Origin: Hyphochytrium catenoides
Taxonomy: Eukaryota > Protista > Hyphochytriomycota
Reading direction: 5' to 3'
Assembly (NCBI GenBank): GCA_900088475.1
Contig: FLMG01000099.1
Span: 1 to 41,892, forward strand
DNA length: 41,892 nucleotides
The notes below the pieces were generated by a model that saw only the letters and a list, made by a program, of their open reading frames with translations, was not told the DNA's origin and did no database searches. Below are positions 37,925-38,621 of this stretch, piece after piece. The position numbers were made by a program, and so were the translations under genes. Every line of letters starts with the position of its first letter. The stretch's first letter is position 1.

Positions 37925-38621
37925 ATGCAGATCTTCGTAAAGACTCTGACCGGTAAGTGGAAGGGAAGGCGAGCTTGAGGGTAGCTAGCTCATCGACTGA
38001 GGGGTGTCAACTGGCGATAAAGATAGACGCTTTTCGTCGCACTGAACCAGTTAAGGAGGGAGAGGTTGATGCAAGGGGTATGCGTAAAGGCCTCAGTCAC
38101 CATGGGGAGTTGCTTAAGCTCTGTTTTGGAGACGGGATGGCTTTAAACTGGGGGCCAGAGCTACTGACATGTGGCGCAATTGAGTCAAAGAAAAAGCTCT
38201 TATTGTTCTGACCGTATTGCTAACTATTGTAGGCAAGACCATCACTCTCGATGTGGAGCCTTCGGACACCATCGAGAATGTGAAGCAAAAGATTCAGGAC
38301 AAGGAGGGCATTCCTCCTGACCAGCAGCGTCTCATCTTCGCTGGCAAGCAGCTTGAAGATGGCCGCACTCTCTCCGACTATAACATCCAGAAGGAGAGCA
38401 CTCTCCACCTCGTTCTCCGCCTCCGTGGTGGCGGTAAGGTCCACGGTTCTTTGGCTCGTGCTGGTAAGGTGAAGGGCCAGACCCCCAAGGTCGCCAAGCA
38501 GGAGAAGAAGAAGCCTCCTACTGGCCGTGCTAAGAAGCGCCAGCAGTACAACCGCCGCTTTGTAAACGTTGTGGCTGGATTCGGGAAGAAGGTTGGCCCT
38601 AACTCCAATGCGGGCAAGTAA
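37925..38621 (+). CDS. RPS30: Ubiquitin-40S ribosomal protein eS30 fusion (canonical ubiquitin moiety)
   Basis: Exon 1 37925-37952 ([10 protein letters not shown]|gtaagt), branch point TGCTAAC at ~38218, exon 2 38233-38621. 138 aa = 76-aa ubiquitin ending LRLRGG + 62-aa eS30 ([20 protein letters not shown]...[10 protein letters not shown]...GPNSN). Confidence 0.97.

Follow-up and report, generated by a model that had tools for sequence, protein, structure and literature searches.

A transcribed and spliced ubiquitin–eS30 gene of Hyphochytrium catenoides, very probably orthologous to those of other stramenopiles

A locus of Hyphochytrium catenoides at which ubiquitin is read straight into the ribosomal protein eS30 raises the question of whether this fusion is a genuine gene, whether it was formed in this organism or inherited, and what becomes of its ubiquitin. 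The window, by which is meant the whole 41,892-nt stretch of DNA that was analysed, carries the gene on its plus strand. When the two exons were spliced by script, 138 residues could be read directly from the sequence, 76 of ubiquitin and 62 of eS30. The two-exon open reading frame (37925-37952 joined to 38233-38621) that the first-pass annotation had proposed from the letters alone was confirmed by the sequence and by a spliced contig from the public run X1. The gene is made up of the following features.

37915..37924, plus strand: minimal observed 5' UTR; the spliced X1 contig begins at about 37915, since 37 letters lie upstream of its joint
37925..37952, plus strand: exon 1, consisting of ATG, ubiquitin codons 1-9 (MQIFVKTLT) and the first base of Gly10 (sequence, X1 joint)
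37953..38232, plus strand: intron of 280 nt, phase-1, with GTAAGT donor and TAG acceptor (sequence; X1 joint with GT..AG)
38233..38432, plus strand: exon 2, ubiquitin part, from the remainder of Gly10 to Gly76 and ending LRLRGG (sequence, Pfam)
38433..38618, plus strand: exon 2, eS30 part, 62 codons, GKVHGSL...NAGK (Pfam, PDB matches, bridging contigs)
38619..38621, plus strand: stop codon TAA (sequence; exon 2 in all is 38233-38621)
38622..38702, plus strand: 3' UTR with AATAAA at 38676-38681 (sequence; RNA-type contigs end at 38643-38702)

The first exon reads ATG CAG ATC TTC GTA AAG ACT CTG ACC G, and the C-terminal 66 residues of ubiquitin together with eS30 form a single uninterrupted exon. 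A branch-like CTAAC motif was found at 38220-38224, about nine bases before the intron acceptor. The 280-nt intron gave no Rfam match when snoRNAs and other structured RNAs were looked for, and it folded no better than shuffled sequence (fold z-score of 0.25). No second copy of ubiquitin or RPS30 was present within the 41,892-nt window.

Head to head with the ubiquitin–eS30 gene lies a multi-exon SMC-family gene (31721-37004, minus strand), which encodes SMC_N head pieces and a hinge domain. About 920 nt separate the start codons of the two genes, which suggests a common bidirectional promoter region. On the other side, a GA-rich dinucleotide microsatellite occupies 38958-39000, about 250 nt downstream of the 3' end of the fusion gene; it was skipped as a repeat in the contig alignment described below. 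Further downstream is a 422-codon open reading frame (40063-41331, minus strand) that had no Pfam match.

Both halves of the product were recognised over their full length. Pfam identified the ubiquitin domain with an E value of 9.8e-29 and Ribosomal_S30 (PF04758) with an E value of 1.6e-30, the latter covering profile positions 1-58 of 58, and eS30 chains from the PDB matched the eS30 part at an E value of about 1e-41. The ubiquitin part was identical to the polyubiquitin repeats of vertebrates (Mandrillus, Protobothrops, Opisthocomus) at 74 of its 76 positions, E16D and A28Q being the sole differences; all seven lysines (K6, K11, K27, K29, K33, K48 and K63), the L8/I44/V70 patch and the LRLRGG terminus were intact. 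The two parts are fused directly within one open reading frame, at RGG/GKVHGSL (the slash marks the boundary). The claims of the first-pass annotation that this is a canonical ubiquitin with those two substitutions and an unbroken LRLRGG, that it is joined directly to a full eS30 and that it is not FUBI were therefore all upheld. The exact protein had no 100% match in a collection of 5.8 billion proteins; the present gene model is a correct one and is apparently missing from the collection searched.

Contigs from four public runs were aligned to positions 37600-39000. All four runs consisted of assembled contigs and not of raw reads; that X1 and X2 represent RNA is a guess, and the type of X24 is not known. 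A single 91-nt contig of X1 joined 37951/2 to 38232/3 without a mismatch; the 280 nt that it skips have GT..AG ends, exactly as predicted for the splice. The boundary between ubiquitin and eS30 (38432/38433) was bridged, with over 31 letters to either side, by X1 record 7 (38384-38491), by X24 record 23 (38327-38643) and by X3 record 32 (38382-38663); the last of these carried six differences, so that its source is a relative or a different strain. In all four runs the intron and the flanks (37600-37881 and 38728-39000) were free of contigs, a pattern that fits transcripts rather than DNA. Contig ends at 38643-38702 lay around the AATAAA, and the very high depth at 38258-38445 represented ubiquitin of other organisms. 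The ubiquitin and eS30 parts were thus found in a continuous reading frame on single transcript-type contigs (contigs, not raw reads). Transcript evidence across 37952/38233 and across GG/GKVH, which had been proposed as a check at the outset, was obtained at both places, in one contig for the splice and in three runs for the boundary. The ubiquitin–eS30 gene is real and expressed.

A search for eS30 with an N-terminal ubiquitin in other eukaryotes, also proposed at the outset, showed such proteins to be common in stramenopiles. Canonical ubiquitin–eS30 was present in the oomycete Globisporangium polare (P0175 / GAB9469477.1, 140 aa), in the labyrinthulomycete Aplanochytrium stocchinoi (P0144 / A0A7S3LSY6), in the pelagophytes Aureoumbra lagunensis (P0098) and Pelagomonas calceolata (P0266, P0290), and in a lineage of Tara marine MAGs, where P0276, named "ubiquitin/ribosomal protein S30" by one source, occurred on 102 contigs and P0277 on 61. 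The nearest neighbour in the ESM Atlas was a 65-member cluster of 137-aa ubiquitin/S30 proteins. Among the retrieved proteins with an eS30 motif, the N-terminal part was canonical ubiquitin in 30, a divergent ubiquitin-like domain (mostly animal FAU) in 85 and a short or absent leader in 20. These counts are not a clean taxonomic census: the whole-protein and junction-region searches were swamped by polyubiquitins, because repeated domains sum in the score, and in the eS30-region search the strong conservation of eS30 let animal FAU dominate.

The same architecture has been tabulated in the literature. In Table S2 of Martin-Villanueva et al. 2021 (PMC8122580), ubiquitin~Ribosomal_S30 is assigned nine proteins in the set, which include at least Achlya hypogyna A0A1V9YAD0, Albugo candida A0A024FXC2, Blastocystis ST1 A0A196SE12, Aphanomyces astaci W4G442 and Aphanomyces invadans A0A024U6H6. 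The text of that review mentions ubiquitin fused "even to eS30" (PMC8122580). Apart from this one clause and Table S2, a full-text literature search found no paper that discusses stramenopile ubiquitin–eS30 in its text. This kind of fusion is known, from database entries and from a supplementary table, but is little discussed. The novelty that the first-pass annotation had entertained for this lineage was consequently lost, because the fusion is already documented across relatives, in at least five stramenopile species in that table.

Comparison with these relatives revealed both shared and variable features. In the G. polare gene (L001 6001-6864) the first intron falls at the identical phase-1 Gly10 site (ACC G/gt...ag/GT AAG), although that gene has a second intron whereas the Hyphochytrium gene has only one. 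The Tara MAG genes have no introns, and in Pelagomonas the intron follows codon 2 instead of interrupting Gly10. The ubiquitin parts of G. polare and Aplanochytrium were identical to that of Hyphochytrium at 73-74 of 76 positions, with the same architecture and a full eS30. The best aligned eS30 identity was 90%, to G. polare, and a few residues of the eS30 tail differed from those of stramenopile relatives. The RGG/GKVHG junction is common to Hyphochytrium and the other stramenopile sequences, in contrast to the holozoan-type GG/KVHG. The eS30 tree was built on 64 columns and most of its forks were unresolved. No synteny with the Globisporangium locus was found, the neighbours there being Biotin_lipoyl and FYVE genes and here the SMC gene.

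Two observations on other gene models were made in the course of this comparison. In Pelagomonas calceolata (L007:1501-1895, CAKKNE010000001.1) the annotated protein CAH0363700.1 begins MQASFSAREILDARGR-IFVK. A GC-AG intron placed straight after ATGCAG (GCAAGC...ACAG/ATC) would yield a perfect ubiquitin N-terminus, and for this reason the deposited model is probably wrong. Five metagenome contigs of 800-1100 nt (P0001, P0003, P0023, P0032 and P0039) have two ubiquitin units before eS30; these are either real di-ubiquitin–eS30 genes or assembly joins of polyubiquitin and ubiquitin–eS30 transcripts.

Could the fusion nevertheless be an artefact, with ubiquitin and RPS30 exons mis-assembled together, or a dead retro-copy? 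Ubiquitin repeats are prone to assembly collapse, and the two-unit open reading frames on short metagenome contigs could themselves be joins of this sort. In Hyphochytrium, however, 66 C-terminal residues of ubiquitin and eS30 share one unbroken exon, the boundary is spanned independently by contigs of three runs, the splice is seen in one contig, and the intact frame is accompanied by canonical splice signals and an AATAAA, so that an artefact is extremely improbable. Virtually no weight was given either to the idea that RPS30 acquired its ubiquitin unit recently and in Hyphochytrium only, a lineage-specific event that had been put forward in the first-pass annotation as an independent capture. 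The same fusion with the same RGG/GKVHG junction occurs in relatives, the intron site is shared with G. polare, and the architecture extends through oomycetes, Labyrinthulomycetes, pelagophytes and Blastocystis; these orthologs effectively refuted the capture, even though new fusions are known to arise from ubiquitin genes (PMC6332867) and synteny with the Globisporangium locus is absent. The locus is instead very probably a transcribed, spliced nuclear stramenopile gene for a ubiquitin–eS30 precursor that would be cleaved, by analogy with related fusions. The Hyphochytrium gene is most likely an ortholog of the ubiquitin~Ribosomal_S30 genes of the oomycetes, Labyrinthulomycetes, pelagophytes and Blastocystis.

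The fate of such a precursor may be proposed from what is known of Ub-eL40, Ub-eS31 and FUBI-eS30. Cleavage would be expected since an intact LRLRGG followed by Gly constitutes an ordinary deubiquitinase substrate. By this analogy, ordinary deubiquitinases would cut after Gly76, co- or early post-translationally, and the cut would free conjugation-competent ubiquitin and a mature eS30 beginning GKVHGSL, which would then be built into the 40S subunit. Until its removal the ubiquitin part may act in cis as a transient chaperone of a ribosomal protein that is very small and very basic, and the fusion would tie the supply of ubiquitin to ribosome production. The suggestion that RPS30 is here an extra source of conjugatable ubiquitin, processed by deubiquitinases, was accordingly judged likely on the same comparison. 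The opposite view, that ubiquitin is never removed and remains attached to eS30, either as a permanent domain on the ribosome or as a regulatory degron, draws on the fact that cleavage in stramenopiles is a matter of inference. It is nonetheless very unlikely: the terminus is a standard deubiquitinase substrate, the maturation or function of the subunits suffers when FUBI-eS30, Ub-eS31 or Ub-eL40 cannot be cleaved (PMC8354635, PMC8122580), and the ubiquitin has stayed canonical, as expected of a protein that is released and used.

Under the precursor model, the canonical sequence of the ubiquitin part would be held by purifying selection together with gene conversion with other ubiquitin genes. 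The homogenisation raised in the first-pass annotation found some evidence in the Tara cluster. There, the substitution S65A, which is specific to that lineage, occurs in both ubiquitin units of P0103, the one proximal to eS30 and the partial one upstream. There is thus some evidence, at the level of sequence, that the fused ubiquitin may be kept uniform with the other ubiquitin units of a lineage.

The wider history of these fusions is less certain. The ubiquitin(-like)–S30 fusion is regarded as holozoan by Shalchian-Tabrizi et al., by Lee et al. 2010 and by van den Heuvel et al. 2021, and it has been published as a 'holozoan synapomorphy' (PMC2346548, PMC2866331). Database content contradicts holozoan-only statements, as the fusion occurs well outside Holozoa. 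A single ancient origin is a tentative possibility, in which the fusion would be an old eukaryotic gene and not a holozoan one, and FUBI (as well as P0123, described below) would have escaped independently from homogenisation and drifted. If this were true, the 'holozoan synapomorphy' (PMC2346548, PMC2866331) would be invalid. The junctions (GG/G-KVHG versus GG/KVHG) and the intron positions differ, and argue neither way with any strength on the question of origins.

Three further sequences were recorded in this connection. The glaucophyte Cyanophora paradoxa (P0178, EukProt EP00741), which is outside both Holozoa and stramenopiles, has a divergent ubiquitin-like–eS30 protein. In the filasterean Pigoraptor chileana (P0211, EukProt EP01137; transcriptome only), canonical ubiquitin precedes a holozoan-type eS30 with GG/KVHG, which is possibly an ancestral or re-homogenised FAU state or a transcriptome chimera. 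P0123, a protein of 148 aa from a Logan contig, combines eS30 bearing a labyrinthulomycete-type C-terminal extension with an N-terminal domain that is identical to ubiquitin at 29 of 76 positions and ends RLVGG. Relatives with the same type of tail (Aplanochytrium and the Tara MAG cluster) keep canonical ubiquitin, and P0123 looks like a case of independent FUBI-like drift, to judge from its sequence.

Among known systems, the fusion is closest in kind to Ub-eL40 (UBA52/Ubi1,2) and Ub-eS31 (RPS27A/Ubi3), in which canonical ubiquitin is likewise placed head-on to a small basic ribosomal protein. Their logic is presumably the same, with cleavage by deubiquitinases, a cis-chaperone role and a coupling of ubiquitin supply to ribosome synthesis. 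Ub-eL40 and Ub-eS31 need cleavage for subunit function and the ubiquitin aids production of the ribosomal protein, and in yeast under normal growth most ubiquitin comes from the ubiquitin–ribosomal fusion genes UBI1-3 (PMC8122580). In Hyphochytrium the partner is eS30 and not eL40 or eS31, making it a third partner of this Ub-CEP-type class. Table S2 also lists Ub~S27 in Aphanomyces astaci and Ub~L40e in Albugo candida (PMC8122580). In stramenopiles the eS30 fusion exists in addition to the two universal ubiquitin fusions, with eL40 and eS31, so that three ribosomal proteins are made as ubiquitin precursors. For the Hyphochytrium gene alone this means little, since databases already contain the fusion and the gene adds a further ortholog to it.

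FUBI-eS30 (FAU) of Holozoa resembles the Hyphochytrium protein in that a beta-grasp modifier ending in GG stands N-terminal to eS30 and the precursor must be cleaved for 40S maturation; in human cells, uncleavable FUBI-eS30 impairs that maturation (PMC8354635). Over 58 compared residues, the eS30 parts of holozoan FAU and of Hyphochytrium shared about 84-88% identity. In contrast, the FUBI moieties of coral and vertebrates matched only about 17-29 of the 76 positions of the Hyphochytrium ubiquitin, and FUBI is described in papers as being without the chain-forming lysines of ubiquitin, of which the Hyphochytrium moiety has all seven. The nearest relatives of the Hyphochytrium protein are stramenopile, not holozoan as the distribution of FAU would require. 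Since it lacks the divergent ubiquitin-like moiety that defines FUBI-eS30, the fusion does not belong to that type. FUBI needs USP36 (PMC8354635), and stramenopiles with ubiquitin–eS30 presumably rely on general deubiquitinases; a comparison with their fusions of canonical ubiquitin to eS30 would be a natural way to ask why a protease devoted to FUBI is required in animals.
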